Source: Marsupella aquatica (lineage: Eukaryota; Plantae; Marchantiophyta). Taken from it: 64,000 bases of DNA. Below the pieces are notes generated by a model. The model saw nothing but the letters and a program-made list of their open reading frames with translations, searched no databases and was not told where the DNA came from. Position numbers and translations under genes: made by a program. Shown one piece after another: positions 9,701 to 43,300 of the stretch (within the stretch, counting starts at the first letter, position 1; the number at the start of each line of letters is the position of its first letter). The stretch is taken from NCBI GenBank assembly GCA_973895155.1, contig OZ316898.1, positions 18,921,292-18,985,291 of the forward strand. The letters run 5' to 3'.

Positions 9701-12585
9701 AAAACAAAAGCTGGTAGGTCCCCCACAATCTGATGGTAATCCTTAAATTTAGTGACATCTAAGTGATCAAGAATATGAGTAGTCTTAGCGTCTAGGTCCG
9801 CCCAATCTGATAGTAATCCTAAATTGCAGTGACATCGAATGATCAAGAATATCAAGTCTTAGCGTCTCCGCCCTGACAAAGGTACCATTGGTCACTCTGG
9901 CCAATTGAAAATTTAAATAAAGACTACCCTGGTAGTCAAGTCTCGGGAATAACTTGATGGATGCCAAAGTAACATATCCTGGACTTTGGGTTCTGGTTAA
10001 AAGTCTTTCTTGATTAGAGTGCATGGACGGCACCGTCCTAATCTTCTTTTCCAGGGTCTTATAGTGGGTTGATTCCAGTGTAAGAGCACTAACTGTGTAG
10101 TGCTCCAACACAATATGATTAGTGCATCAATACCGTTTGTTGTACTTGAATGAATGTTGTGCTATTGCCTGCATAGAGACTTGCACCCTAAACCCTTCAA
10201 CCCTCAATCCAGCAGCAACATGAATGGACTGTAGCAGGCACACTGACCATGGTAGCTGCCATTGTCCACTGACCACATGGAATGACTGCTGGTATGGTCA
10301 GCATCAGTGAGCTAAGATCATTGTGCACGCTGCCAGACATGCTTCCCCATCAACTAGTTTGGGGTCCATAATGTTGTTTGAGTGGGTTAATTTGAGTGCA
10401 AGAAGACTAACTGTATTGTGCTTCAATTCAGTAAGATTGGTACATCAACAGAGTTTGTTCTGGAGAGATATGCTTAGTAGACCCCCTTCTTGAAAAAGTT
10501 TGCTAAATCAATCCCCTCCATGCTTTTCCCCAATCTGGACCGTTGATGGACCTTTAGATCTCAGATTTGGATCATTGATAGATCTCAGGGGGTTGATCAA
10601 GTAACAAGTTTCATTTTGGGGGTCTATCAAACAAATACCTCGTTTGTTCTACTTGAACATTGTTCTGTTGCTTGTGTGGAGAGCTGCACACTATATTTGT
10701 TCAAAGCCTCACTGCAGCAACACGAATGAAGTGTAGGTAGGGTCAGCTTATAGAAGAACATCATGGTTGGTGCCTCCATGAAATCCTCCATCAAGGATGA
10801 GGATCCATTTTGCACCTGGTGAAGCAATTCTCGAAGTCTCCCATGTGACTCCTCCACACTCAAAAATCATCGACAGGAGAAGTGCCGTTTTAAACTTCTC
10901 GTGTAATTGCCTAAATGAACAACCTACCCTTCACTGCTATTAGTCTTATTTCCCATTAAAATTTACCCACAACTAGGATTGCTAGTCTAATTGGGTTGAC
11001 CAAGACTATTGTGAAAAATCAATTAAAATTTAGGAACTTTTCACGTAGATCAAATGCAATAAAGTTCTTGTGTAGTCTAGTGGATGTCCGCATGGACATT
11101 ACCTCATCGGACATGAACCATGTATGACTTCGTGGTTTTTGAAGTATGAAATGTGCGTGCACTTGCGAGTTGCGTCTTTATTCAACACGTAGGCCTTTCT
11201 CCGAGCTTTCCACAACCCTATATTATACAGATTGTGAATTCAGTCTATCATGTACTTAGCAAGCGGTCCCAGCTCTTGAGGGCTTGCATCATTTTTGTGT
11301 GCTCTATTCTTCGGTTGCCTTTACTCCGTTGACCAAATATTGGAGCTGGGCTTATCCTGCGCCTTGTTACTCTAGTAGTCCGTATCAATATCAGATATAC
11401 AAAACTTTCTCTGGTGTTTGGTGTCGTTGCTCCCACAGGCAAGACACTGTAGCTTAATAAAGTTGTCTGAGTTTTTGTACCTTCACACCACAGGCAAGAT
11501 CAAAGACAATCTCAACTGAAAGGGATGCATGATATCTTAAGGATAAAATACATTAATTTCTGTTTTACTTTAAAGTTTATTTTGGTGTGGAGGAATAAGC
11601 TCCCATGGACTTGGGGACAGGAGAGAGTTACTAGATGGACCCTATGAGGCCCCATGAGATTTTAGAAACCTTGATTTAAGATCTATCAAAAATATGGATC
11701 ATTCACATGAGCGATAAAGGGGCCCACTAGCCACATTGTGTCCCCAAAGGTCATGTAAAGTGAAGTTGCGCCTAATCTCAAACCTGAATGACTCGCACCT
11801 CAGACAGATAATGACACAAATTCTAAGAGCACTTCATAGATTCCTAAGTGTTTAAACATCTTGAGAGCCTAGGCATGACTTGTGATTATTATTTTTGACA
11901 CAAAATTGCATGAGGGGAAACATGTGCATGAAAATAATTTGGCAATGGAAGTTCATAAAAATAAGGTTTTCCAAAACAACCAGCAACCAATAAAAATCAT
12001 GTGCATACGGAAAGGTATGCTACAAGGAACTCACAACAGGACAAAAATGTCTGTTTACTGGCATGATAATGATACCCCCTAAATGCAAGGCCATGCCTGA
12101 TTCCGGGTAGTGTGCAGTTAGGAAGAGTACACTGCACAAGGGGCCAACTCGCCCTTGATTACCGGACGAAACGTCACCAAACCTTGAGGCGCCCGAAAAG
12201 GAGAACCACAACATACTCGTGATGTCATTCGAATGCCACAAGTGACGGCATTCCCCTCCCCACTACTAAATCGGTCCTTTCCGTAGGACGGGTGGGCCTA
12301 GTATACTAATAATAATAACATATTGCCATCCAGTACAAATTCGATGGATGGGGTGGTAGACTGTCTTGTACAGTAGAGGGGTCGGTGTGGTGGGTACCGT
12401 CTGCCAGACGAAACGACTACAGTACCGTAGCAGCTGAGCTGAGCGCCGCTCCAATTATAGCCTAAAAATTCAGTTAATTAACTAACAGAAGTCTGCTCAA
12501 GAGCAAGTTTGTGAGTGGCAAAAAGTGCCAATCTACTACAGCACTCAGCAGCCTGCCTCCTGTTTACTGAAATGCTAGGACTTGA

Positions 12586-21927: not shown

Positions 21928-23906
21928 AAGAGGAGTGGAGAGGCAAACCATCCGAGGCGAAACATCCGCCTGTGCTGCCCCGGTCTGCCCTATCCGAGGC
22001 GAAACATCTGCCTGTGCTGCCCGGGTCTGCTCTGCCCGCGCGCCGGCCACAGTGGGCCTTCTGGGTGCTGGTCAAGGACGAGATCAGGACTTTTCTTTGT
22101 GGGCCGGAGAAGGCAGAAAAGAAAAGAAAAAACGGGAGAGGGAAGGCCGCTGCCCGGCTCCGCCACTGAGAACGCACGCGCTTGTACTCTCTTCTGCGTG
22201 GACTGCTTCGTGGGTAGCCCAGAGCGGACCGGACCAGAGCAGACCAGAGCAGACCGGATCGGACCGAACTGGACCGGACCAGAAAGAATGAGTAGGCAGA
22301 CTGACTGACTTACTGACTGAATGACTGACTGACTGACAGGCCGATCACTGACTGGCGAGTGACGCGAGTGACGCGAGTGAGAGCGACAGGGGCAGCAGCC
22401 CAGCCCATTCCAGCAGCGAGAGTTTGTTGAGGAGGGGGCAGTCAATCTCTTCGCTAATCGACTATTCCATTCTCGAGTTAGAAGTTTAATAAGGCATATT
22501 ACAATAATAGTAGTGGGCAGTGGAGTGGAGTGGAGTGGAGTGGAGAGGAGGCGCTGTAGAGGAGGGAGAGAGAGGGAGAAAAGAGGGACGCGGGAGGGGA
22601 GGGGAGGCCCCACAAGGGTAAACAAACAACATGCTGGGACGGAGGAGGAGGAGGAAGAGGACCACGTGTAGTACTAGGTGGCTGCTGTCTGGTTGGGTTG
22701 TTCACGCTGTTTATGGGATTTGGGTGAGCGAGAGAGTGATGAGTGTGAGAGTGTGAGAGAGAGAGAGAGGGAGTAAAGCGTATCATTCCGTTGTTTGACA
22801 GCGTCCTTAGTTTGTTTCGAGAGAACGAGAAGAACGAGGAGAACGAAGAGACCGAAGAGCAGCGGACGAAGAAGGGAAGGGAAGGGAAGGGACGCGTAAG
22901 TGGGCGAGGGATTGGGCTTTTCAAAGCTCGGCTTGGGTATGATCGGAAGGTTGCTTTGACTCGCTGGCTGACTGTGGGTCTGCGGGAAGGTGGGAATTTT
23001 GGCTTTGGTGTCGAGAAGGTCGTGGCGAAATCAAGAAGGGGGCATTGGAGAATCGGAGGAGAGGCAGGGAGAAGGAAGGGTGGTGCGGCTCTGATTGACT
23101 CACTTGACTCACTGCTTTTCGGTTTAGCATCTTGAATTGAGGCGAATTCCGGGAGTATTGCTTCTGTGTGCGTGTGTGTTTGTGGGTGTTGGGGTGAGGT
23201 GAGGAAGACGAGGACGAGGAGGATTTCGAGGAGTAAGAGTAGGGGGTGGAGGAGGAGTTTGTTTGCAATTCTTCATTGGCGTGACGGAATCGGACAGCAA
23301 GGAGCAGTAGGAGCAGGAAATGGCCGGGAAGACGAGGGTTGGTGTGATTCGTAGAAGATGATGGAGGTTTGACCTCCTCATTTTCTCCCTGGTGCACACC
23401 TCTTGTTGACAGCCAGCAGTGTTGTCAATTCGAGCGCCAGTCACATCGCATTCATTTGTTCCTCCCTTGGTATACGTACCAGTGCATAAAAAAGCAGCAG
23501 CAGCTAAAGCAGGAGGAGCAGCAGCAGCAGCAGAAGGAGGAGCGACGAGAACATGTCGGTGGGAGAGTTCTTTACTGTTAGTTAGGACGTCCCTTGTCAC
23601 CCCTCCATTGGATTCTCTGGGAATTCCAGCAGCGTGGTGATCCTTGGTGTGGGGGGTGGGTTGGGTGGAGGTAGCGGTAGGAGAGAAGGCCTGGCCGATC
23701 ACAGTGGTTGATCTTTCGTTGCAGATTGAGGGAGTGGAGGAAGGATCCACTTAGCAGCCAGCCGAGTAGACTCTTCACGACGAGGGTCTGACTTGAGATC
23801 CGGGGATGGTAAGCTGATCAGGGACTGAGATAGACAGACAACACAACAACTGGTGGTACGAGGGGTAGTAAACTAGCTGGTGTACGAGGCTGAAGGAGGC
23901 GGACTG

Positions 23907-26900
23907 ATGGTGGAAGCCATGAACACATGGCGAAGCTTCATGGAGCGTTCGGGAGTCGATATTTGGACCGTCATCGAGCAGTCCATCATTTTGGCTCACA
24001 CTGACCATTTCGACCAGCTCCGCTTGAGAAGAGATGGTTTTGCAGAGCTCATGTTTGCCCCTCGCATCCCAAAGGGCTCTGACGGTGGCTCTGTTCGCAA
24101 AGTCTCATCAGAAAAGGCCAGCGCTAGCAGGGGAGTGTACAAAGGGAGGCACGAGGACAATGAGGACGTAGAACGGGTGCCCCAGCATGTGACGGAGGAG
24201 GAGGACGACGAGGAGGACGAGGAAGAGGGCCATGGTGACGGTGCCCATAAAGAAGAACCGAGGGAAATAGTGCAAATCGACAGCGAGTACGAGGATGATG
24301 AACATGTTGCACAGGACGCAGTTCCCCAAGACCCTTTCGATGAGGATGTGGAGGCCTTGACGGACGATATCGAAAGGGAGAAGCTTCTCATGAAAGAAAT
24401 TTATTCCATTAAGAACAACATCGACAGCCTCCCCCAAGGCCGTTTCATGGTCAGTTTATTCAGTGCCCATTTCAACATGTTGGTCAATTCGATGACGGAA
24501 TCGCATGATTCAACCGTTGTTCACATACACCGTAGCTCAGCTGGCAACAGTCGTTCTGCACTGTTTGTCGACTTCCGGCCTTACATTTCAAAGTTGCGCA
24601 TGGTGTGGTTGTAGAAGCCTTCCGACCGTAGACGATAGAACGAGAACTCCTTTCATAGATTCTGTTGGAGCGTTCTGACCTTTCTTTAAAGAAGGAGAAG
24701 TTCGTTCGTATTGTCTTGGGCAGTGTCTATGGTACTCCAGAGGCCGTGGATGTATACGGGTCTGGACAACGACGAGAGTTAGGCAGCTCTTCTGATGATC
24801 GGTTGCATTCTGGAATAGGGGAGATTTCAAATGCGAGAGGTTGAATTGAGAATTCGAATTGTTATGGGAAGAATGACCCTTACAAAGAACAGAGAGGAAT
24901 TAGAGAGCGTGAATGACCTAAATGTACTGACCATCGACTTCGTCTGACTGCAGCCTGAGGAAGAGGCGATGGACATCCTATACAGGGTCCAAGAGTTGAA
25001 CATCTCGGTGAATGCGCTCAAGGTACGCCCAGTTCCGTCTGCTGTGCGAATCTTGGTTGTTCTGACTTCAGACTGGGGACGAAAGGCGAGGTTTTGATCT
25101 GTATCTCTCATGGTGTGACGGTTGTGGTTTGGACCATCGTAATGTGGTAAATATCCTCTTGTGCAGGATACGAGTATCGGGAAATCGATAAGCAGATACC
25201 GCAAGCATCCGAGCCAAGCCGTAAAGGCCAAGGCGAAGGAGATCGTCAGGTATTTGCGCACCCATGGGTTTTCTACGTACCTTCTGATCAGCTCATCCAG
25301 CAAATTGGTGCAATTGGCGCGTGTTGGGCATCGCCTGGAAAATCCTGGTTTCGTGTGCTTGCTGGGAAAATTCGGGACAAGTTGACCTAGTGTTCTGGGA
25401 GGGATTGCTGACAATTTATTGTTTCCTTCGGCAGCTCCTGGAAGGAACTTGTCGATGAGTACTACGAGAACATGCCCGCTCTCTCGGCGTCTGCAAACGG
25501 TACGTCGAAATTTGCTTACAGTTTTGGGGTATGGGTAATACTGGTTCGTAGCAGGGTCTTCCAACCCTATTTGAGACGTACTCTACATGTCATGCTCATT
25601 CTGGATGCGCTGTATCTTTTTCAGAGGATGCTGTTCTTGTGGGTGAACAGGAGGTTGGCCTGCCCTCCCCTCCCCTTGATGTGGGTGGTTTGATGGCCGC
25701 GCGGACGGTGGAAATATCAGAGGTATGTCAATTAACTCCTTGATCCTAAGTACTTCAGACTCCATTGATGATTGGTAGTACATATGGGCAAGGGATAGGG
25801 TGTGTAATTCTTACAAATTGCCAGTTTGCCTCTTCAGATATGTTGAATTTGTCATAGAGATGGAAGGAGTAAGACTTAGCAATTGTCTCAATTCTGCCAT
25901 CTTCCATCCTCTCTACTGACTGAACTGGGCCTGTTCTTCGGTCATTGGTGGTGCAGATTTTTAGCTTCTCGGAGTCTGACCTATGTAAGTAACCTTCTTT
26001 CTGTTTTGGAACCATCATGGAGCATATCCTTCGCTTCCTGGATCCATGTCTTGACACACCCTTGATCTTTAGGAGCAGGTTGATTATATTTTGAAGCACT
26101 TCTTATCGAGAACTCTAATTGCGCAGATGTTTTTGGCTTATGCTGACTTCGTTCTTTTGCATTGGATGAGCAGCGGCAGCTTCTGGTCCAAGTCCGGCCT
26201 CGGACGGCCTATCCGTTCACCGGAGTGGAAGGATATCAAGCAGCAGTCCTGACCAAGAACTAGCGGCACGGGGAGCAGCGGGCGTGGCAAGAGTGCTCAA
26301 AGTAGATAAACATCGCCCAGTGCACGTGGAGGGCAAGGCAGATCAAAGCAATGCTACTACTTCTAGTGGTAGCATCAGAAAGGGGCATAATATGTCAAGT
26401 GGAGTCAGGCCAAACAGTGGAATGAATGGTGCGGCAGTTACCAGGATGGCTGCAGGTCCCAGTGCCCCTCAAAGACAACAACAGAGTGCAGGTGCTGTGA
26501 GGAAATCAGATTCACGGCCGACACCTAGTGTGGGTGGTATCAGACCGAGAGTAGAATCCACCAAGCCAGGACTGGCAACAGTAAGAATCTCAATTTGGCC
26601 ACCAACCTTTGATGTCCTTTTTCAAAGGTCAAACCTTGTCTGCGCCCTAAATTTTTGCTATTCTGGGAGCTTAATCGTCATTCAGCATATGTGGTGGTGA
26701 AATTTTTATTGCTAAGTGCATCCAGCCATCATGGTGTAGGGGTACATTGCGCTTCTCCTTCCTTCTGTTTTGATTTTTCAAGTGAGTTCCAGCAGATGGC
26801 TTGCTGATATTATGTAAATTGTCTGGTTCTTCTACCTGCAGAAGCCTGAGTCCTTTTCCAACGATGTGAACGCAAGAATGGAGGCGTCGAAAAGAAAACT

Positions 26901-30083: not shown

Positions 30084-30221
30084 CTTTGTTCCATTCACCC
30101 TCCCCTCACCTTGCCCCACCCTCAGAATTCCCAGTATCCAATAAGCCAATTTAGAATCAAAACCATGGAGGAGCCACCCACTCCAAAATAAGGCTTACCT
30201 AGCGCTGCATTAAGGGGATAT

Positions 30222-30394
30222 CGTGACATATAGTATCGTAGCCATAGTGTATCAAAAACATACAAGTCATCGGCAATGCATATGTGCAAGCTGCTAGCAA
30301 CCAACATGCATAGAAAAAGTCCAATCACATTCACAAGTGCCAAGAAAAAGCAACTGAGGTGGTATGTACGTAGTGGAGGTGTAAACCTCTGTAT
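30222..30394 (-). repeat. Terminal repeat B2 (173 bp)
   Basis: Matches 30758-30930 with about 3 substitutions. Confidence 0.95.
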
Positions 30395-30752
30395 ATAAAA
30401 GGAATAAGAGAAACAATCGTACTGAAATCAAATCGAAAACCGGCAGGATGCCAAGATCAGCTAGGAGCATCTAACGAATCACTGTGTGAATCCCGTGTAC
30501 GGAACCGACGAGCACTGTCTGAGCTCTGTCAACAGCGATTCAAGAAGAACTAAAAACCAACAAAGAAAGACGTGCCCTAAGTAAACAAAGTCTTGGCATC
30601 ACACTAACAAGCGTGTTTGCTTCAAGAACGCCTGGAATTTGCTATAAGAACATGTCGCTAACTCAAGTAGTACACTAGCCCTAACTACATACCTAACGGG
30701 CATGCGAGGGACATGCCGATGTGCATAAGAGGCACTGTCCCTTGGCATGACA
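30395..30752 (-). repeat. Terminal repeat A2 (358 bp)
   Basis: Matches 39946-40303 with about 14 substitutions by eye, mostly transitions, and no indels. Confidence 0.95.
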
Positions 30753-30757
30753 GCTAT

Positions 30758-30930
30758 TGTGACATATAGTATCGTAGCCATAGTGTATCAAAAACATACA
30801 AGTCACCGACAATGCATATGTGCAAGCTGCTAGCAACCAACATGCATAGAAAAAGTCCAATCACATTCACAAGTGCCAAGAAAAAGCAACTGAGGTGGTA
30901 TGTACGTAGTGGAGGTGTAAACCTCTGTAT
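30758..30930 (-). repeat. Terminal repeat B1 (173 bp)
   Basis: Matches 30222-30394. On the element strand it ends ...TGTCACA and is separated from A2 by 5 bp (gctat on +). Confidence 0.95.
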
Positions 30931-30937
30931 CCCCCCC
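30931..30937 (-). other. Putative polypurine tract (G7)
   Basis: GGGGGGG on the element strand abuts the first base of B1 and lies just downstream of the integrase-PHD stop at 30970. Confidence 0.65.
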
Positions 30938-30969
30938 AGACCACAGCCAAAAGGAGGGCTGAAGAAAAG

Positions 30970-32250
30970 TCAGGTAGCACAGGAAGGGCAAAACCATAAC
31001 CCTTCTGGCACCTGGGTAAGTTCAGGCCGAAGGCAGAAAAGATGGTACCCTCCATTGCAATTATCACATAGCAGCATCTGGTCAGCATTGTCAATGCGCA
31101 AACACACTTTGCAAGGGTAGTCCACAGGTGGAATCCACGTAGAAGTCACAATGGTGGGATCTAGGTTAGGCAGATGACAAGGAGCGCAATTCTTGGCATT
31201 GTCAGCAATTGTGCGCCCATCTACCCCTTGTAACTCTAGCACTCCAGACGGTCGAATAGCTTTAACCCTGAGAATAGTACGACTAGTAGAGGTGTCCAAG
31301 GTGTCGTTAGCTTGTCGCTGCAAGTACACAAAATCTCCCACATCAAACTTCCTGACCTTGGGCTGAAAAGTGTCCCCTCGTGTGTGTGCATAACGCAGTG
31401 TGTCCCTGTGCTGTGCAATGGCCAAATTCTCCATGGCCATGGGCATAACCCTCCTGAATAGGGCAGCCCTCTCAAAGATCACATCAGACCAAGTCACAGC
31501 TGAATCCAAGTCCATCACCTGAAGCATGTGAGCAGCAATAGCAGAAGGTGGAACTGGGTGACGATCAAACAATAAGAAGTAGGGAGAAAAATTAGATAGT
31601 GATGCATGTATGGACATCCTATACCCCATGGCAATGTAGGGTAAGGCCAGGTCCCAATCCTCCTTGTTTTTGGTGAGGCAGATTTTCCGGAGGCCCTTCT
31701 TGCATGTCTGAACCATGCGCTCTGCCAAGCCATCTGCCTATGGGTGATCTCGTGATGTCCAGCGATGATCAATGAGGGCCTGATCAAGCAGCTCCTGGAA
31801 CTCTCCTCTAAACTCTGAGCCCTGGTCAGTGAGACATTCTGCACAAGCTCCAAAGCAGCTTAGAACTTGTTGCAGGAATGCCTGGCTAGTGCTACGGGAG
31901 GTCTTATCCGGCAATGCCACAAGTTCTATCCACTTGGAGAAATGTTCTATCATGATCATGATGTAAAGATTACCCCAAGATGTGAGGGGTAATTCTCCAG
32001 CCAATCACATGACCAACGATAAAACATGCCCTGAATAGGGAGTGGATGAAGTGTGGGTTGCCGAGATGTGAAAGAAGTCCTTACCCTATCACACTGCTCA
32101 CACCGGGCAATAACATCTCGAACCTGGCCATGCATGCCTCTCCAATGATAATGAGGGACCAAGAGGCTGTAAGTCCTCTTAACGCCAAAATGACCAAGCT
32201 CAGAATGTACCTTACGGATAAGGCCAACTCTCTCATGAATGGGTGGAACC
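30970..32250 (-). pseudogene. Integrase (HHCC zinc finger + DDE core) with C-terminal PHD finger; frameshift near 32005, in-frame stop at 31738
   Basis: HSELGHFG...CEQC; WSCD/LAG...IEHFSKW; LTDQGSEF; DHP*ADGLAERM. PHD: CKVC...LLCDNC...YHLFC...WFCPSC (C4HC3). Confidence 0.9.
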
Positions 32251-33950
32251 ACCACTTCCCTGTCTGGCAAGCAGCGCACAAGATGATCTCCCTTCCACAA
32301 GTAGCGCTTGGACCTTTGCTGAATTTGGTCTCTCTGGGCAGCAGTAACATGGGTGGGGTACTCCCCATGCTGCAAAAATCTTAGAGTGTCGCTGTCCTCC
32401 CATATGTCCACCACAGGTTGGTCAACAACGTAGCATGGCAGCAAAGCAAGATAGGTAGATGCATGAAATGTAGGCAGGATGAAAACCTGGTCAAAATCTT
32501 GCCGTGCATCTGAGGAATCATCAGAGGCAATCAAAGGGCTGTAAGACATAGTGTCAGCATTTTGATGTGTCACACCAGGCCTATGAATTACCTCAAAATC
32601 ATACTCCTGGAGTATGAGCGCCCAACGAGCAAGCTTGCCAGTAAGCTTGTTGTTGGTCATCAACCACTTCAAGGGCTGGTGGTTGGTGTAGAGGACAAAC
32701 CTGGTCCCATAGAGGTAGGGCCTGTAATGTATGACAGCCCACACAATAGCAAGGCATTCACCCTCATACAAAGAATAATGACTCTCTGCCTGATTGTTGC
32801 TCCTGGATGCATAGGCAATGACGTACTCTTTACCTTCCTCATCATGCTGGCCCAGAATGGCACCAATCCCAAGGGCACTCCAATCTGTGTGTAGCACAAA
32901 GACCTTGCTGAAATCAGGTCTTCTCAGCACTGGGTATTCTGAGAGCTTCTCCTTCAAAGTGGCAAATGCTGCCTCACAGCATCTATACTCCATGTCCAAG
33001 TCACATTCTTTTTCAACAAAGCATACAATGGATGTGCAATGGTACTGAAATCTTTGATGTAGATCCGGTAGTAATTGCACAACCCAATAAAGCTCCTAAG
33101 AGTGTGAACATCAGTAGGAGTGGGCATTTCCAAGATGGATACCAGCTTGGCCCAGTGAGCCATGGTTCCATTTGGAAGAATGCGGTGCCCAAGGTATACT
33201 ACTGATCTGACAGCAAATTCACACTTCTTGGGGTGTATCCTTAGGTTCACCTTCTTAAGCCTCATGAATAGCTCTTCAAGGTCAAGTAGATGCTGGTCAA
33301 ATCCTTTGCTGTGGACCAACACATCATCAATGTAGCATTTCAGAAACTCAGCACCTTGAAGAACCTGGTCCATGACTCTTTGAAAGAATATGGGCGCATT
33401 CTTCAAGCCAAATGGCATCACCAACCACTCCCATAGTTGCTTACTGCCATGGAAAGTTGTTTTCTTGCGGTCCTTTCCAAGCAGCAAAATCTGGTTAAAG
33501 CCTTGCCTTAGATCCACAAGAGTGAAGATGTCTGAGTCTCCAATGCTGTCAAATAGCTCCTTTGGCCATGGCATGGGGTACCTGTCCTGGGGTGTGACCA
33601 GGTTCAATGGCCTATAGTCCCTACACATGCGCTTCTCTGTCCATAATCCACTGGAATCCTTCTTTGCTGGCATCACTGTAGCTACTGCAAAATCTGACGT
33701 AGATGGCTGAATAAGACCAGCTTCATAGAGCTCTTGGCACCTCTCATCCACCAGCTGCCACTCATGCTTACTCAAACGGTGCCTCCACCTGAAGATAGGT
33801 GTTTCATCAGCCAACTCAATGGAGAACTGCATAGTCTTGCACTTACCCAAGTCCTTCATAGAGAAAGCAAACACGTTCTCATGCTTGAGGAGCAAATTCA
33901 GCAGCTGGTCCTTCTGTCTTTTACTCAGGTGGTTGCCCATGATGAATGTG
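32250..33950 (-). pseudogene. Reverse transcriptase + RNase H; frameshift near 32985
   Basis: RMCRDYRPLN, DLRQGFNQI, MPFGLKNAP, YIDDVLV, KKCEF, YLGH, FIGLCNYYR. RNase H: LHTDWSALGIGAIL, IAYASR, EGECLA, KLARWALILQEYDF. Confidence 0.95.
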
Positions 33951-34299
33951 TAGTTGGCAACACTAGGAATAGGACCTGATGTACTCATGCTTGAAGAGCC
34001 AGAAGTGCCAGCCTCTCCACTATCCAAGCTGCTAACATGCTGCTGATAAGGTGATGAGGCCTCTCCAAGGCCTGTTGTACCTGCTGATCTGAGTTGGTCC
34101 ACACCATGAAACTCAGAAATACTGTCAGCCACGTTACAAGGGACCTCCTCTCCCCCAACACTTGGACTGAAGCGGTGAGTGTTGAATAGAGATAAGTGCA
34201 CCTGGTCCGGATGCCATGTAGCAGCACCATGGAGTGGGAGAGCTGGAACTCCAGATGTTGGATGAATGTACATCTGAAAAAGGATGCAAGTGACTAGAA

Positions 34300-35240
34300 G
34301 CCAAGTGAGAGCATTAAGATCCATTACCCTGCCAAGTAAAGCATTCCTGGCCAGCCTGGTGATCTTGGTGTGACTTGTAGTACCGGATTGGAAGCCCATA
34401 GCCCGTTCTCTCTCCTCAGGACTAGGTTCATCCCATGTACCAGTACAATGTCGATAAACCAGGCCAGGACCATCACCCTGAAAGGCATGTGCACTTGGAA
34501 AGGATACAAATGTAGGCCAAGCAGCACGGGGCTGTCCAATGGTATTGGCTGGATACCAAGGTGCTGGCTCTTGCCGTGTAACTGGTTGGCAAGAACTGTC
34601 AGGATCCAAAATCTGGTCCACTGTGAGGTTAGTGTCCCTGGATGTGTGGTGAAGAGCTAACTCCAACAAGGAAGGTGGTGCAAGGTTAGTCCAAAAGTTA
34701 CGAAGACGATGTGCATAAGAACCACAGTGCACTGCATCAATGAGAAGGGGTGGTCCCAAGTAGTGCTGGGCCACACTGAAATCCTCTTTGACCTGTGGAC
34801 GCTAGTCAAACTGAGATGGAGTATTCTCAATGATATAACCAACAACAGGATAAAGGGATTGAGCCCAGGTGAGAATCTGAACCAATGCTGTGAAAAGGCC
34901 AGAACGAGAATCATGCAGTCCAGCACCGTGACCAGCAGCTGAAAACCCTTGGCATTCCCAACCAGCTATGATCAAATCAAGGGAGCCAAGAAGGGTTAAG
35001 TGCCGGTGCTGGACAAGCTGGATATCTGGAGGAAAGAAAGAAAATGCAGACTTCCATGCACTGTGTGGAAACTACTGGGGAAATCGCTCTGAAAATTCCA
35101 GCAGACGGGATTTAGCCACTTGCCTTGCACCTGGATCAATATCCACATAGATGTACTGCTTCACCACCATGCCAGACTGTAGGAGAGCTTCCAGGCCTGT
35201 AGAAATGCCACCAAAAAGCTTAAGCAATGTAAGGCCATCT
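34300..35240 (-). pseudogene. C5 cytosine DNA methyltransferase domain within the polyprotein; in-frame stops at 35072 and 34802
   Basis: Read through the stops in one frame: motif I LKLFGGISTG, II YVDID, III DI, IV DLIIAGWECQGFS, V SGLF, VI IIENT, VIII HRLRNFWTNL, IX ERERAMGF, X RNALLGRVMD. Same frame as the upstream protease and downstream RT. Confidence 0.88.
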
Positions 35241-35499
35241 GAAGGAGGAGTCCATGTAATCGGTGCGCTCAAGATTGGGGCTATTGGTTGGCCATTGTGC
35301 TGCCCAAGGTCCTCAAATTTGTGCAATGCAGCCACCAAAGGTCCATGGGCTGCTTGGAGCCGTTATACCACCTCTGGTTGATGATCCACGTTGCTGGAAA
35401 GTGCTACTATACGTGCAGCAGCATGTGCAGTAGCCACCTCATCATCATCCTCCTCAATCCAATCCTGCAATGGGTGGTTGACATAGGTAGTTGTGTGCG

Positions 35500-35930
35500 C
35501 TGCTTTCAACACACAGTGGTGAGCCATAGGTGTATGGGCACCATGCAAATCAAGTGGAATGTAGCCCAAGTGTGAGCCATCCGTATGCCAATCAACTCTG
35601 TAGTATGCATGCTCATGCCAATTGTCAATGGTAAAACCTGGTGGGAACAAAGCCTCCTGGCCAATGAGCACATCATATGTAGTGGCATTGGTAACCAAAC
35701 ATCTGACTGGGAAATGCAGTTCCTGATCTGTACCTCCATTAAAAGTGAGAGTGAGTAAAGTAGAACTCTCACCCAGCACATCCTCCACAATGCCACTAGT
35801 AGTCCGAATGTGCCACCTGGATTGCTGTAAATGATCAGTCAACAGTCTCATCTTCTTGGCAAACTGAATGCCCAATATCACTGGTTGAGCGCCTGTGTCT
35901 AGCATGACCACCTGAGGAGTGTGACCTCCA
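35500..35930 (-). pseudogene. Retropepsin-type aspartic protease
   Basis: VMLDTGAQPVILG ... YDVLIGQEAL. Confidence 0.85.
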
Positions 35931-38349
35931 ACTTGACCGCTGAATTCCTGTTGTCAACAATGGCAATGGTGGTGGAAACTAAAGTCCTGTCACTAGGCAC
36001 CACTTTTGGCAAATGATGAGGTACCTTGTGAAGGGAGTTAGTGTCCACGGTCTTCCCACTCAACAGCATAGCCAGGAAGGATGGAGCAGCATGACCAGAA
36101 TCAAGAGTAGCTCTGGTCACACAATCTACAACAATACTGTCATCTCTACCATTGGAAATTGGTACTGGGATAGCCAAACCAGTGGAAGCATGTAATGGAG
36201 AAGAAGAAGATCTAGCATGTACATGAGATTGGACCTCCAAAACCGGTGGCACAGGGGCTGATGAAGAATGCAGTGAGCCCTCTAGCGCTCTCATGACAGC
36301 TCTAGCATCCAGTTGTAAATAATGGCAACTAAAAAGTGGAGTTGTAAGAATCCTTTGTGCCATACCGGAGGTGAAATGCTCAAGCAGCTCAGGAGAAACA
36401 ACTCCCTGTGAAATGTTAGCAACACCTGGTGGTGGAATGGATGTAGCTGCAGCTCCCTCCCCCCTCGCCAACAAGGTGCGCTCTTCAGCAAGTGTGAGTG
36501 GCTGAAAAGATTGGGCAGGACAACCCGAGCTCCCTTGGCTCTAGTCATAGGACCGGCAGCAAGACCATCAGCCTGTACAATGTGGCGTGTGGGAGCAATA
36601 CAGGAAGCAGCACTGGCTTGCTGGTAAGCAAAATAGGATGGGCATAATGAATCTGAAAATTCTGCTGTAAGACCAGGCTGTGTAGCAGAGGACAGCACAC
36701 ACTCACCCATATGAGCATCAAATGGCAAGCCATAGAAAGAGCGGGGTAGAGGTGCTGAACTGTCAGTGGTGCCTGGGCCAGGGATAGGTTGCACGTGACC
36801 AGCCGGTTGAGAAGGACCAGTAGAGGCAGTTGACTTGCCTTTGATGTTGGCAAGTTGGGCACGCATGGACTCAACCTCATGAGTCAAAGACTGGAGTTGA
36901 GTTGCCTGTGCGTTGTGAGCCTCCTTCTGAGCTGGTTGCTTCTGTTGCTGCTTGGGCGATTTGTTGGCACCAGGTGCTTTGCCACTGGAAGGAGGAGCAA
37001 CTGAGGCAATAGGAGCCCTCCTAGCTAGTGGGGGAGTGGAAGCAGGAGTAGGATGAGGGGCCTGCTGTCGTAGCTGCTTCCTCTCTGGGAATTTGGCAAA
37101 ACAAACTGCCTCCAAGTGACCCACTTTCCCGCAAAAATCACAAGACAGGTCCTCAGCAACAATATCACATTCATTAGCCTTGTGATTGGGGTTACCACAG
37201 TAGTTGCAAGATGACAGCATGAAAGCAGCATGGGCTGGCTTGGTCTTGGAACCATACTGTGGCACACGGGAAGGGGTGGCCAGTGTAGGGGCAGCAGCCT
37301 GGTACCTGGATCGCGGTGGACGCGCAATACTGGCCTCATAATGTGCATGGGCCAACTCAAGTTTCTCAGCAGTGTCATAGACATTGAGCAGGGTGTAGCT
37401 GTCTCCAAACTCTAGAGAATACTTGCTGCAACACTTGCGAATGGAGAGCTGGTGTGCCCTCCAATGCGCAAAGATAGCGATGAGCAGCTTCCAGGTCAGT
37501 GATGCTCTGAGTGTCCTCCTTCAACTTGAGAAGCCGGCGATACATCATCTTCAATATTTCATCGCGCTGCCTCACAAAGGTGGCCAACTGCATGATTTTG
37601 TCAGCACTCTTGATTGGGAATTCCAATTCAAGAACCTGGAAAAACTCAGCCACTGGATCAACAAAGGCAGGGGAATCAATGGTGGAAGAAATGCCTGATG
37701 TAGCTTGTGCCAAGATAGTGGGAGTAACTGGTGCAGTGGTGGGAACTGGAGTAGGAGGGGAAGTGGCAGGAGCAGCAACATGGGTTGCAATAGCATTCTG
37801 TAATGCCAGTTGTGAAGCAGCCGCAATTGTAGTGGCATAGGCAGGGTTAGGCAATTGTGTGACAGCAAGCAGCCGTTGAGAGTGCTGCTCATACACATCC
37901 AAAGCCTCATGGTGCACATACCTGGCTAGCTGCTTAAATGCAAAAGCATTTGTGAAATTGCTGCCATACTTCAACTCCAATTCGTAAACGATAGTGTAGA
38001 AAGTGGATTTGAACTCATGCAAAGAAACAGTGCCTGGCCGCCCGCTGAAGCGTTCAATGCGGCCAGATGAGTGGCTGGCGTCCATGCTGTATGTCGGTGA
38101 AGTAGGAACAACCACAGATGTAGAAGGGGTAAATGGCAATGAAGTGATAGCAGGCTTTGGAGTAGTGGTGAAGCGACCGCCAAATTGAGCAGAAGGATTG
38201 CGTGGTGTGGGTGCTACTGCTGTCTGCGGACGTCGTCGAAATTGCCGAGACTCCAATGAAATTGGCACCAATGGTCGTGGATCACTCCATAAATGGTACC
38301 TGGGTGTCGGTGGCGATGTGCTACTACCTCCTGGCTCGTCGGCTGACAT
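35930..38349 (-). pseudogene. Gag with two CCHC zinc knuckles plus linker; frameshifts near 37410, 36480 and 35920
   Basis: IERFSG...EF capsid-like start, then CNYCGNPNHKANEC and CDFCGKVGHLEAVC. ORFs 37375-38349, 36291-37355 and 35899-36474 abut or overlap. Confidence 0.8.
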
Positions 38350-38929
38350 GCTCCATGCTCACCCGGGGTGCCAATGGGAAAGAAATTGACAAGAAAAAAG
38401 AATGGCAGCCCCAAGGCTAGGAAATAAAACCCACAAAGGAAACAAACGGTGCGAGGCAGAAATGTGTTGAATGTGTAAACACACAGAAAAACCGTCGTCA
38501 AAGAAAAGACTCTTAAAAACTCCAATTATACCGGTGTTGTGCTTGCTGGATTGACTGTCTAATGAATATGTCGGGCCCTAGCTTTATGCAGATGACACGT
38601 GACGGCAGCAAAGAAATCCGGACAAATGGGCCCTTAAAAACGTAAACCTGGGACCCCCTTAAGTGTATACATCGGCCCTTTCAAATGTATAAACATGGGG
38701 CCCGGTTAAGTGTATACATCGGGCCCTGATGTGGACCCGGGAAGTAGCAAGCAAGACGGAAAAGAGACCGGGCGCGCGTCGGCAGCAAATGGTCGTAGTG
38801 GGGACCGGCCGCGGTGCCCTATGTACATGCCCTCATGGGAGTCTAAAGACCCTCGCGCAGCGGACGAGCGACCACGGAGGAACGGGGGGAAAAAGACGGG
38901 ACCCAAGGCGAGGCGAGAGAAAAGAAAAA

Positions 38930-39465
38930 TGGCCTTAATTGCTCCAGCCCTGCATAGGGCTTTGTGCCATACGCCCTCCTTAGTCCTTATGACCTCCCGA
39001 AAAGGGAGGCTACGAGCTCCCCCTCAATCCACTCCTTAAATGCTTCCGTGCCTTGCAGAGTGGCAGAAGGACTCCAGGGAAAGGAGTCGAATTTAACTCC
39101 CCCCCTCTTTAATTCTCCATAGGGCCTCGTGCCCTCCTTGCGCTTCAACTCCCCCTCCTCCTTGCTTTTGCTTGTGCTTGGCTGCCCCTCCCCCTGCTTT
39201 AATGCTGCTTAGGGCCTCGTGCCCTCTCCTGGCACTCTCGCTCCCCCTTTAATGCTTCATAGGGCCTTGTGCCCTCTCCCTGCACTCGTGCTTTGGCTCC
39301 CCCTCCCCTTTAACGCTGCTGAAAGTGGGCTCTATGCCCTGCAGGACGACTCCCGAGAGAGGGAGTCAAATGTACTCCCCCTTTAATGCAGCATAGGGCT
39401 TCGCGCCCCCCCCTTTCGCTTCCCCCTTCCCTTGTTAATTCTTCAGAGTCCTCTGTGCCTTCTCC
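38930..39465. repeat. Degenerate tandem array in the element 5' leader
   Basis: About 7 copies of a ttaa(t)gct.catagggcct.gtgccctc-like unit at ~38935, 39109, 39199, 39249, 39310, 39383 and 39435. Confidence 0.75.
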
Positions 39466-39933
39466 TCTCGGCTCCCGGCTTGTACTCGCTGCCCCGAAAG
39501 AGTCATTAAAATGTAAGGCAAAAGGTGAAGGGAAAGAAAATGAGGGGAAGAAACAGGCGCGCGGCCCTATGCACTCGGGAGGTATTCGCGAGGTGGTCGC
39601 GCTGCGGCCGAGGCAGGATGGCAGCCGTGGCCAGCAAAAGAAACACCAAAAAAATGGCCCAAAAAAGGTCGTGGCAGGCGCTGAAGCAGCAGTTGGCAGC
39701 GGCCGGAAACGAAAAACCATGAAAGCAAAGCGCGAAGGAAAAGAGGGGGGGGGGGGCTGTTTGACTTAAGTGTATATACTTAAGTGTATACACAAAAGTC
39801 ATAACTTCCACCCCATCGCTCAATGTTTTTCCATAGAAATTGCACCGGCATCAACGAAAAAGTGTCAATTGTCTCGAGAAATTGAGAAGCACAGCGTCTC
39901 TGATCTTCTTCCCTTCACCGCTAACCCAGCGGC

Positions 39934-39947
39934 AGTTCTTCTTGAAT
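39934..39947 (-). other. Putative self-priming primer-binding site
   Basis: agttcttcttgaat (39934-39947) is the exact reverse complement of attcaagaagaact (40089-40102) inside repeat A1. It sits at the inner edge of A1, where a PBS is expected. Confidence 0.65.
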
Positions 39948-40303
39948 AAAAGGCGTAAGAGAAACAATCGTACTGAAATAGAATCAAAAACCGGCAGGAT
40001 GCTAAGATCAGCCGGGAGCATCTAACAAATCATTGTGTGAATCCCGTGTACGGAACCGACGAGCACTGTCTGAGCTCTGTCAACAGCAATTCAAGAAGAA
40101 CTAAAAACCAACAAAGAAAGACGTGCCCTAAGTAAACAAAGTCCTGGCGTCACACTAACAAGCGTGTTTGCTTCAAGAACGCCTGGATTTTGCTATAAGA
40201 ACATGTCGCTAACTCAAGTAGTACACTAGCCCTAACTACATACCTAACGGGCATGCGAGGGACATGCCGATGTGCATAAGAGGCACTGTCCCTTGGCATG
40301 ACA
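39946..40303 (-). repeat. Terminal repeat A1 (358 bp), element 5' end TGTCATG
   Basis: Matches 30395-30752. Confidence 0.95.
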
Positions 40304-43300
40304 AGGAAGAATATGCATAGAAAGGAAGTTGCATTCAAGGGTTTAGTAGCAGGGAGAATGGGATACCTAATTCAAAGACTGCTACAGGTCAAGTACAAGA
40401 CCAGCATAATTGGTAAACAAAACCTGGAGAAGAATCAACCTGGACTAATAACTCAGCTTGCCCATGTGATACCCACTCATCAAGGGAGAATTGAAGCGAT
40501 CCAGCCTAAGGCAATCACGGGGCAAGTGATAATCCAAGAATAGCAAAATAACGGAAGTAAGAAACAAAGCAGGGTCCGGGTCAGGGAAAGAGCTACTAGG
40601 AAGAAACAAAGGATTTGTCCTCATTTGTCCCTTGTTCCACCCTTCTTGGCTTTAGTTGTTGAAGGGGGGAGGGGTGCAACTACAAATTACCTTTTAACCC
40701 AGCCTAATCTAGATATGTCTGTTCATACTATTGTGACCAAACTTTTTAAAGCATAGAAAGGAAAGTTTTTACTACACAAAATAAAGAATGTCCTTATTGT
40801 GTACCCCTTATAAAGTAAAATAGTGTGTCCAAACTTCAAAGAATATTCTTTTCCATATAATATGGGTAACTTAACAAATTTAGGCCAGGATCAGCCTGGT
40901 ATCCTTCAAGATACAGTAATCTAACACCCTGAATGCTGAATTTTATGTTACTTTCCCTCCTCCTATTGTGGTATTGTTGGTCACACACATTTTTCAAAAC
41001 ATGGCCCATAGTAGACCCAAGAATAAACCCCTTTGCTCCTTGCATGAGTGGCCTGGACTCCTTATTGGGTATGCTTGGTTTAAAAAAGATCCCAACTACT
41101 AAAATGGCATTATGTCAATTTTTTAATGTTATACATATATGATGTACTCAGGGGGTCTCACTATATGGATGTCTCCCCATCCCCTGCGACGTTTTTAGGC
41201 CTTGGACACCCTAAAATGTAAGAAAAAATATTTAATTTTCAACCCCTATAAAGTTGGAATATTCAAGAATATTCCAAAAATTTGGTGTGGAAGTGAAACC
41301 CCCGAGATGATGTATATATCATAATTAAAGTTGTGCATCATGCCTGGGGTTGAATCCTAGAGTAACCACTATAGGGATGACCAGGTTGAAGCAGGTCAAG
41401 TGTGAAGCATTACTTTTATGTCTTTTCTGATTACAGTGCAGTCCAAAACTATTTTATCTGGATTCCATTTTTTTAGCTAAAAGTCAAGGTATACATTGAT
41501 AAGTAGATATTACATCAGGATGCTGAGAATATTTTAAAATATGCTTTTGAAAGACTACTTTAGTAGCTCTATGTTGGGCCGTGATACTCTTCCCAGATGC
41601 TTCCTCTAGATGGACCCACAATTTTTGAGAAGTAATGGGTCGTGTTCAAATGTTGAATTGAACTTGAAACACTATCTTTCCTTTGTATGCATGATCAATT
41701 TTGTTGGGTCCTTAAATCTGCTAGGCCCATCTGAGTTGCATGGTTACACATTGTGGGTGATCCATGTAACAAACAGTCTACTTAGACTAGGCAGCAAATG
41801 CAGGGACATGAAAGCACACTCAATCACATGGTGCACAAATAATACATAACCGATGGAGAAATTTCTGAAAGATCCATACTATATGAGAGTACATGCAAAG
41901 AATGAGGGAGAGAACTCACTCCAACCTACCAAACTAACTACACTAGTGAACTCTCAAGTGAATTCCTAACTATCCAAGCATCCTTTTTAGTTTAAAGGGG
42001 ATGGAAGAACACCTCAAAATACAAATGGATTGGCTATCATATCTCACTAGCATATGATATATTGTAGTGTCTCCCACTGAACAATGGGCCCTGTTTTAAG
42101 ACTTTTTTGAGTACAGAATGATAGTTCACTTTCACAGCTGCTGTCTAATGAGTCCTAACCAGGCCTCTTTCAAAACTTGGTGTAGGTTGTACATTTCCAA
42201 CATATGTATCTCCCACGAGGTGGACTAGGTAGTCTCTAACATACTTTTTTGGATATAGCCTATGTTATAGTTATGTTGTACTTGGCAAAAACTGGGTCTT
42301 CACAGGTTTGTTTCCAATGCAAAATTGATTGCCTCTTCATTCTAACTACACTCAAGGATCTGCTAAAACTATCGTAGTTTTTAGTCTACATCTACATCAG
42401 TGAGCCTAACTCGAGTCCGATGTAGTACAAAAGTGGCAACTACACATTTGTTTTTAAGGTAACATAAAATGTGAAAATATCGTTGCAAAAACAGTGGGAC
42501 AGTGGGGGTGCTCTTACAAAGGTAAAGTACTGCCATATTTTTTTTCTGAGATCTGGGGCTCTCACCTGCACAGTAGTAATGGTGCTTGTCATCCAGCCAG
42601 ATCTCACCAAGTAGTGGAGGTTCCTCTGGATTCTGAACTTGTTCGTGTCATTGGGATTAAGGTGTAGTACTCGATATGTCCGAGCTCAATATCATTCGTA
42701 TTCGCAGATTGGTGATTTGATTCGGGATTACTTCCAATTCGTAACACTGAAATCCGTAAAAAGTGACAATTCTCACTTCCCGTCCACCCTTACTCGAGGG
42801 GCTCAAAAAGAATCGAGAAACTTTGGTACCAGCCGTTTTTCATTTCATTCGCCGTTCAAACAAATCAGGAAAGATCATGTCGGTGCGTGTGGCGGATAGC
42901 GAGCAATACTGTGATTTCTCCCTTTTTTGTCTGTCCACTGTTTAGATCTATTTGGATGGGTGTGGAGTGCCCCTTCGCACTTATTGGAGATTGACACAGT
43001 CTGAAACAACATCAACAATAAATGTCTGGAGAATGGGACAGGAAAAAAGTGAGCGCAATTACAAAATTCGGCAGCGTTAAGCCTGAGCGCCCGTGAATTG
43101 TCAAGATCAAATTGCAGCCCTCGTTTGCAAAGCCAGCAAGAATGTGGGTGAGATCAATCTCAAGTTTCTGATTCGAAACTATTTAGACTTTGGTTTGAAG
43201 TTGGCTAAGGCTAATTCCTGCGGATGAATGTGTGTCAATCTCAAGAGACGAAAGATGTGTTTTAATTCAACATCATTACTATTGAGCTTTCGTTCTACTG

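Follow-up and report, generated by a model that had tools for sequence, protein, structure and literature searches.

The liverwort Marsupella aquatica carries, within a stretch of 64,000 nucleotides (assembly GCA_973895155.1, contig OZ316898.1, positions 18,921,292 to 18,985,291 of the forward strand; hereafter the window), a Ty3/Gypsy retrotransposon with a DDE integrase whose terminal repeats are split and rearranged. All repeat parts lie on the minus strand of the window, and read on that strand the element consists of a repeat segment A1, an internal region of 9 kb, a poly-G tract, a repeat segment B1, a spacer of 2 nt, and second copies of both segments, A2 and B2. The same split-repeat layout is found family-wide in the relatives of the element. 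From the ends, target duplications and priming signals of these copies, we consider it probable that complementary DNA (cDNA) with joined ends is integrated by the DDE integrase at a palindrome inside the reverse-transcribed repeat, through a directional route. The stronger claim, that the lineage obligatorily integrates cDNA in which the unique 5' (U5) end has been joined to the start of the unique 3' (U3) region, and that its integrase uses a CA-GC-TG site within U3 and not the cDNA tips, is one that these genomic copies lead us to hold and to doubt in equal measure.

The two A segments measure 358 bp each and are 96.1% identical, and the two B segments measure 176 bp each and are 98.3% identical; one B, the spacer and one A together make up 536 bp (Table 1). 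The 22-nt motifs with which A and B start have no further occurrences in the window, where the chance expectation is 0. The end of A2 and the start of B2 are fused exactly, in agreement with a first-pass annotation of the window, which had described a clean fusion of two predicted cDNA ends at 30394/30395. The order of the parts given in that annotation is likewise confirmed by repeat comparison, but its account of the B end has to be revised. It had placed the outer end at 30222, with a changed terminal base, and had recognized TG and CA dinucleotides facing each other inside the repeat, as TGTCACA and TGTCATG around a 5-nt spacer, atagc, which it predicted to be conserved. In the relatives, B ends with ...CACGACA, followed by 2 nt (ancestrally GC) and then by TGTCATG. 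The B2 terminus of the window reads ...CACGATA and its B1/A2 region reads ...CACAATA-GC-TGTCATG, both decayed by transitions, and it is because of this decayed B end that an internal CA was mistaken for the terminus and a 5-nt spacer was read. The facing end sequences and the TGTCATG half are thus retained, and TGTCACA gives way to ...CACGACA as the end of B. With the right end at 30219, no changed terminal base is required, and the flanks at the corrected ends, TCCT and TCCC, form a 4-bp target duplication with one mismatch.

Of the 35 copies listed, 32 have a spacer of 2 nt, and the remaining three rows are out of register. Variants of the spacer (AC, AT and GT) are almost all transitions from GC and sit on the CHG cytosines (H being A, C or T) of CAGCTG, so that they look like methylation-driven decay and not like a variable target duplication, a behaviour that the first-pass annotation had named as contradicting its model. 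Changes in the CAGCTG core as a whole (loci L013-L092; window 30751-30760) are mostly C-to-T or G-to-A at CHG cytosines and have recurred independently in many copies, which suggests methylation-driven decay of a putative integrase site.

The signals for reverse transcription identify the repeat that the cDNA is predicted to carry. A run of 6-10 G directly precedes B1 in nearly all copies examined, and A contains a site whose exact reverse complement makes up the first 12-13 nt after A1. These pairs covary, at an offset of 0 from the A end, in the window element, in L001, L003 and L010, and in L008 from Closterium; no such match was found in L006. The covarying complementarity at the A end leads us to predict priming of the self-priming type. 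Since the primer-binding site adjoins A and the poly-G adjoins B, the reverse-transcribed long terminal repeat (LTR) would be B-GC-A, and the 536-bp LTR composed of B, spacer and A that had been proposed for the window is upheld by these signals. The end of A is accordingly assigned, from its sequence context, as the U5 end and the start of B as the start of U3, with a predicted transcript start about 200 nt into A. With B-GC-A as the LTR, the back-to-back integrase ends would lie inside U3, and A2|B2 would be a joint of U5 with U3. The alternative that A-B is the true LTR and the internal region has been displaced was rejected because, in every lineage, the polypurine tract adjoins B and the primer-binding site adjoins A.

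Relatives in liverwort and Closterium, together with others on metagenome contigs associated with bryophytes, allowed the layout to be followed through about 85 independent copies. Proteins related to Pol of the window element are present in the liverwort Calypogeia fissa, several Closterium strains, Sphagnum and many metagenome contigs, and its closest named relatives are in a liverwort. Poly-G, B1, palindrome, A2 and B2 follow one another on the 3' side in C. fissa (L002, L003 and L010), Closterium (L008 and L012) and metagenome contigs (L001, L004, L006 and L009), and the 5' end of these relatives, where present, is a lone A1. Perfect 4-bp duplications flank L001 (GGTC), L003 (AGTG), L006 (TTCA) and L010 (CACC), the last of which is a young copy with repeat identities of 99.3% and 100%. 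B2 is truncated in L008, where no target duplication was found, and no repeat structure was recognizable at the Sphagnum locus L011.

Scanning the metagenome contigs with an integrase alignment yielded 80 loci of the L001 type, or 76 independent copies after removal of double-assembled loci. Their 3' side reads B-xx-A|B in 34 copies and a single B followed by unrelated flank in 25; one further copy has a single B interrupted by an insertion, and 16, mostly on short contigs, were not assignable. The 5' side, readable in about 21 copies, consists in every case of a lone A with no B before it. Both ends were readable in ten A-int-B-A-B copies of this type (int denoting the internal region), with six perfect 4-bp duplications and two with one mismatch, and in eight A-int-B copies, again with six perfect duplications and two with one mismatch. 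Over all relatives, the long form A-int-B-GC-A|B was counted 41 times and A-int-B 25 times, and the 4-bp target duplications were perfect in 16 of the 23 copies examined, both inserted forms included. Among the approximately 85 relatives there was neither an A-B-A-int-B copy nor a conventional 5' LTR of the form B-GC-A, and thus no element with two conventional LTRs and target duplications, which the first-pass annotation had expected to be prevalent should its model be wrong. The tabulation of end structures that it had proposed therefore bears out the layout for the family as a whole, together with two of the three predicted forms, A-int-B-A-B and A-int-B; the third, A-B-A-int-B, was seen in 0 copies, compared with 15 long-form copies with both ends readable across all assemblies.

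The window holds one copy, which is decayed and whose target duplication has one mismatch, so that taken by itself it would also fit a one-off event at this locus: a misassembly, a tandem or solo LTR beside a truncated copy, or an ordinary LTR element that has undergone unequal recombination. More than 40 independent copies, however, drawn from no fewer than five assemblies and three plant lineages, repeat the order, the palindrome, the joint and the 4-bp duplications. A layout shared across the family is not a rearrangement or misassembly of one copy, and the family comparison has already refuted this explanation, to which we attach next to no weight.

Side observations were made at two of the C. 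fissa loci. The L002 copy is 5'-truncated, and next to it lies an inverted A-B unit that stands alone (L002:3805-4378, minus strand), with two extra bases at A|B and no target duplication. Other near-identical repeats, up to 1.2 kb long and 99-100% identical, occur around and inside the young copy at L010 (1-3850 and 8082-12557) and are probably parts of other mobile elements.

The fine structure of the U5|U3 joint varies between copies. In the L001-type family, the A end meets the B start exactly and bluntly in 14 joints, one AT (a 2-nt microhomology) is missing from eight, three have one additional T, and several are singletons; the joint of L008 has one additional nucleotide. Nearest neighbours in the integrase alignment shared their joint type in 11 of 21 cases, with 11.2 expected, and joint type therefore carries no phylogenetic signal. 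Because the joint is variable and not inherited, it is formed anew at each insertion. B1 and B2 are not differentiated classes (permutation p = 0.42), as expected if one template regenerates both in every cycle; B2 was nearest to its own B1 in just 6 of 30 copies, an uninformative test given copies that are about 10% diverged and a burst-like family. At L006 (15091-15398; the same locus as L007), a 322-bp copy of the element's own pol (10977-11298) lies exactly between A2 and B2, flanked by microhomologies of 9 nt and 5 nt, and resembles the filler DNA of end-joined or template-switched junctions.

These observations bear on a second explanation, in which A-int-B-A-B would be copied by templating as in DIRS/PAT-like elements, its ends restored from the B-A junction, and a linear TG...CA cDNA then integrated in the ordinary way. 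Such copying would yield a single permutation, as is found, and tyrosine-recombinase retroelements have split direct repeats in the same layout (PMC5890265). It would not account for a poly-G placed exactly at the start of B and a self-primer at the end of A, which is what ordinary LTR strand transfers predict, nor for a joint whose fine structure is not inherited or for B1 and B2 segments without separate lineages, and abundant A-int-B copies with target duplications would be unexpected. We regard templated copying as very doubtful.

The reading we favour can be set out as a sequence of steps. Minus-strand synthesis would be primed by the transcript's own 5' end just after A, and plus-strand synthesis at the poly-G just before B, so that the resulting cDNA repeat would be B-GC-A. 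The integrase ends TGTCATG... and ...CACGACA would then stand back to back around GC, at a point about 200 nt upstream of where transcription is predicted to begin. If both strands of CA-GC-TG were cut after CA, the recessed ends would carry CA-3'OH and leave 5' overhangs of 2 nt, which is the processed form that a retroviral-type integrase normally acts on. One side of the target would receive the A half-site from the upstream repeat and the other side a B half-site, generating the 4-bp duplication. Were the B half-site drawn from the downstream repeat, the insert would be A-genes-B, a form that may alternatively come from a one-LTR circle. Were the U5 end of the cDNA first joined to the U3 start, a B would lie beyond A2 and the insert would be A-genes-B-GC-A|B, the form present in the window. 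We infer from the copies a substrate that is circular or circle-like, the integrase as the cutting enzyme, and a reason for the single permutation; one possibility for the last is that the plus strand is the last to finish and at its U5 end switches onto the already complete left end, which would create the joint and the extra B on that side only. Inserts that are always A-genes-B-A-B or A-genes-B point to action of the DDE integrase at the palindrome inside the reverse-transcribed repeat, TG...CA ends with 4-bp duplications point to DDE-type integration, and the long form indicates that joining of U5 to U3 preceded or accompanied integration.

A less constrained version of this process was the model of the first-pass annotation, namely that end joining by the host produces a free symmetric circle with two LTRs, which the integrase opens at either of two identical internal palindromes. 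The A2|B2 joint, as a U5|U3 fusion with microvariation like that of end joining and one filler insertion, fits such a circle, as does A-int-B if one-LTR circles are opened at the same palindrome, and there is precedent for integrases cleaving palindromic circle junctions (PMC1180852, PMC1905944). Equal use of the two palindromes, however, would give 15 long-form copies and 0 of the mirror form with a probability of about 3e-5, and B adjoins A1 at 0 of about 21 readable 5' ends in the large L001-type family. We therefore think a free symmetric circle unlikely. The absence of the mirror form favours the directional version, and of the earlier proposal of a circle opened at an internal site it is the internal site that is supported, by way of the TG...CA ends and 4-bp duplications at the palindrome and the U5|U3 joint, and the free symmetric circle that is disfavoured.

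Several points weigh against integration of joined-end cDNA by a directional route. The same two identical palindromes predict A-B-A-int-B copies in equal number, so that an additional directional feature must be assumed. The support for a joined-end intermediate comes entirely from genomic sequence, and the transcription start and the poly(A) site are predictions. The A-int-B form might arise after insertion, by recombination between B1 and B2; A-int-B copies do not have longer terminal branches than long-form copies (0.062 versus 0.054, p = 0.59), in a test of low power. Finally, the window copy has TA instead of CA at both B ends, which implies either use of a TA end by the integrase or a C-to-T change at each of the two ends in parallel.

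The internal region of the window element encodes, in order, gag, protease, a DNMT3-like methylase, reverse transcriptase, RNase H, a DDE integrase and a PHD finger. Its Pfam matches follow the Ty3/Gypsy Pol order on the minus strand and are collinear with the genes of L001 in tblastn comparisons, by which gag through integrase account for the internal region. The gag stretch shifts frame several times against the L001 genes. The methylase stretch between protease and reverse transcriptase is collinear with P0001 and L001 (tblastn), intact homologues that carry PF00145, and the integrase core shows 78% identity to the PF00665-bearing (rve) integrase of L001. The PHD finger fused to the integrase is kept in the liverwort and metagenome relatives examined (L001, L002, L006 and L009). 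No tyrosine recombinase was detected by Pfam in the nine open reading frames of the window that were scanned, or among the precomputed domains of the L001, L002, L003 and L006 genes. With two stops each in integrase core and methylase and several frameshifts, the window copy is dead, and we assign it, decayed as it is, to an old Ty3/Gypsy lineage of streptophytes. Between primer-binding site and gag, the leader holds five degenerate copies of a 46-nt unit, and an open reading frame there (39310-39720) gave no match in a Pfam search. Outside the element, window positions 22001-24000 have a G+C content of 0.545 and a GC skew of +0.32, well above their surroundings.

Table 1. Features of the retroelement in the window, in element order (positions are those of the window).
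Feature	Positions	Strand	Evidence or remark
Target-site duplication, left copy	40304..40307	-	TCCT on the element strand; 3/4 positions agree with TCCC of the right end
A1, left terminal repeat, 358 bp	39946..40303	-	Starts TGTCATG, the start motif common to all relatives; assigned from sequence as the final ~201 nt of U3, then R (terminally repeated region) and U5 of the reverse-transcribed LTR
Self-primer site inside A1	40091..40102	-	Exact reverse complement of the 12 nt after A1; predicted transcript 5' end
Primer-binding site, predicted self-priming and not transfer RNA (tRNA) type	39934..39945	-	Adjoins A1 end, offset 0
Non-coding leader	38350..39933	-	Contains the 46-nt degenerate repeat family (39101-39472)
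gag region with CCHC zinc knuckle, frameshifted	35929..38349	-	Weak Pfam zf-CCHC, under the family cut-off
Aspartic protease	35255..35935	-	Weak Pfam gag-asp_proteas; 60% identity to L001 product
DNMT3-like C5 DNA methyltransferase in Pol	34270..35170 (34270 approximate)	-	Translation, two in-frame stops
Reverse transcriptase domain	33179..33640	-	Pfam RVT_1, E = 3e-27
RNase H domain	32601..32978	-	Pfam RT_RNaseH, E = 6e-38
Integrase H2C2 zinc-binding domain	32076..32243	-	Pfam Integrase_H2C2, E = 8.5e-14
DDE integrase core and C-terminal region	31114..32049	-	Translation, two in-frame stops
PHD finger at integrase C-terminus	30979..31113	-	Pfam PHD, E = 2.4e-12
Polypurine tract with run of 7 G	30931..30942	-	Directly before B1
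B1, start of U3, 176 bp	30755..30930	-	End decayed from family ...CACGACA to ...CACAATA
Spacer GC, 2 nt, palindrome centre	30753..30754	-	Family form GACA-GC-TGTC; separates the two integrase end sequences
A2, second A copy	30395..30752	-	Repeat comparison
B2, second B copy	30219..30394	-	Joined to A2 end at 30395/30394 (U5|U3 joint); element terminus 30219
Target-site duplication, right copy	30215..30218	-	TCCC

Measured against the features by which Ty3/Gypsy elements are recognized, the family has the domain order, an rve integrase with H2C2 domain, TG...CA ends with a target duplication, and a polypurine tract with a primer-binding site; it does not have two complete LTRs, the left side being A only and the right side B-GC-A-B or B only. 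A combination of this kind has been described before. According to the legend of Fig. 4c of de Mendoza et al. 2018 (PMC5890265), KnitGypsy-Dnmt3 of Klebsormidium nitens has repeats as in DIRS and the domains of Gypsy. It resembles the present family in its Gypsy-type Pol with a DNMT3-like methylase and its DIRS-like repeats, a likeness taken from the published description. The copies described here come from a liverwort, Closterium and bryophyte-associated contigs, and end sequences, target duplications, primer sites and a mechanism are absent from that paper. Our literature search found no other publication that mentions a DIRS-like layout in Gypsy elements, and none that gives ends, target duplications, primer sites or a mechanism for such elements. 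The layout itself was thus already noted in one paper but unexplained there, and for the route, which the first-pass annotation did not know to be described for Gypsy elements, no published mechanism was found. The comparison of copies made here contributes a second inserted form (A-int-B), the lack of a mirror permutation, a joint that is not inherited and a spacer corrected to 2 nt.

The repeat order A1-internal-B1-A2-B2 is shared with the split direct repeats of PAT and Ngaro, which are related to DIRS. Split direct repeats, likened here to those of the window family, are also present in SymbioDIRS (PMC5890265). The window family differs from these tyrosine-recombinase retroelements in its DDE integrase with H2C2 domain and PHD finger, its TG...CA ends and 4-bp target duplications, and its LTR-type polypurine tract and primer-binding site. 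Tyrosine-recombinase retroelements are not known to duplicate the target site on insertion. As the window family shows, the split direct repeat layout is not a signature of tyrosine recombinases. Software that searches for LTRs will miss or mis-annotate elements of this kind, and their insertion ages are to be read from the A1/A2 and B1/B2 pairs. The A-int-B copies, about 40% of the total, lack a second A, the source of 3' terminal redundancy, and are thus probably dead on arrival.

In Tf1/Sushi and Tcn1 elements, as far as is known, the LTRs are of the usual kind and carry the integrase ends at their tips; in the window family the integrase ends would lie inside U3. What the family shares with them is a primer-binding site complementary to its own LTR and not to a tRNA. 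Self-primed reverse transcription is established for Tf1/Sushi, and the plant Tcn1 clade is predicted to use it as well (Neumann et al. 2019, PMC6317226). Retroviral integrases, for their part, can cleave palindromic LTR-LTR junctions, as reported for prototype foamy virus (PMC1180852) and human immunodeficiency virus type 1 (HIV-1; PMC1905944). The junction of a retroviral circle with two LTRs likewise presents two integrase ends back to back as a palindrome, but in retroviruses palindrome and circle junction coincide, and the route is minor or disputed, whereas here the palindrome is built into U3, and U5|U3 is a separate site that is carried into the genome. Joining of cDNA ends is usually deemed a dead end, and if our reading is correct it can serve a productive cycle. 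All well-studied LTR retrotransposons and retroviruses, to our knowledge, insert linear cDNA by its tips. A lineage persisting from zygnematophyte algae to liverworts, in which a permuted form is inserted every time, would then show that a retroviral-type integrase can use internal back-to-back ends.

A further parallel lies outside the retroelements. For the bacterial IS3, IS30 and IS256 elements, abutted ends a few bp apart are the reactive substrate of a DDE enzyme, and the window family has such abutted ends, with a 2-nt spacer, inside its repeat. These insertion sequences are DNA transposons that move without reverse transcription, and a circular intermediate of the window family would be putative. 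If its route through joined ends is indeed obligatory, the circle-junction transposition of bacteria would have a natural counterpart among retroelements, and the split-repeat layout known from tyrosine-recombinase retroelements would have been reached convergently along this route.

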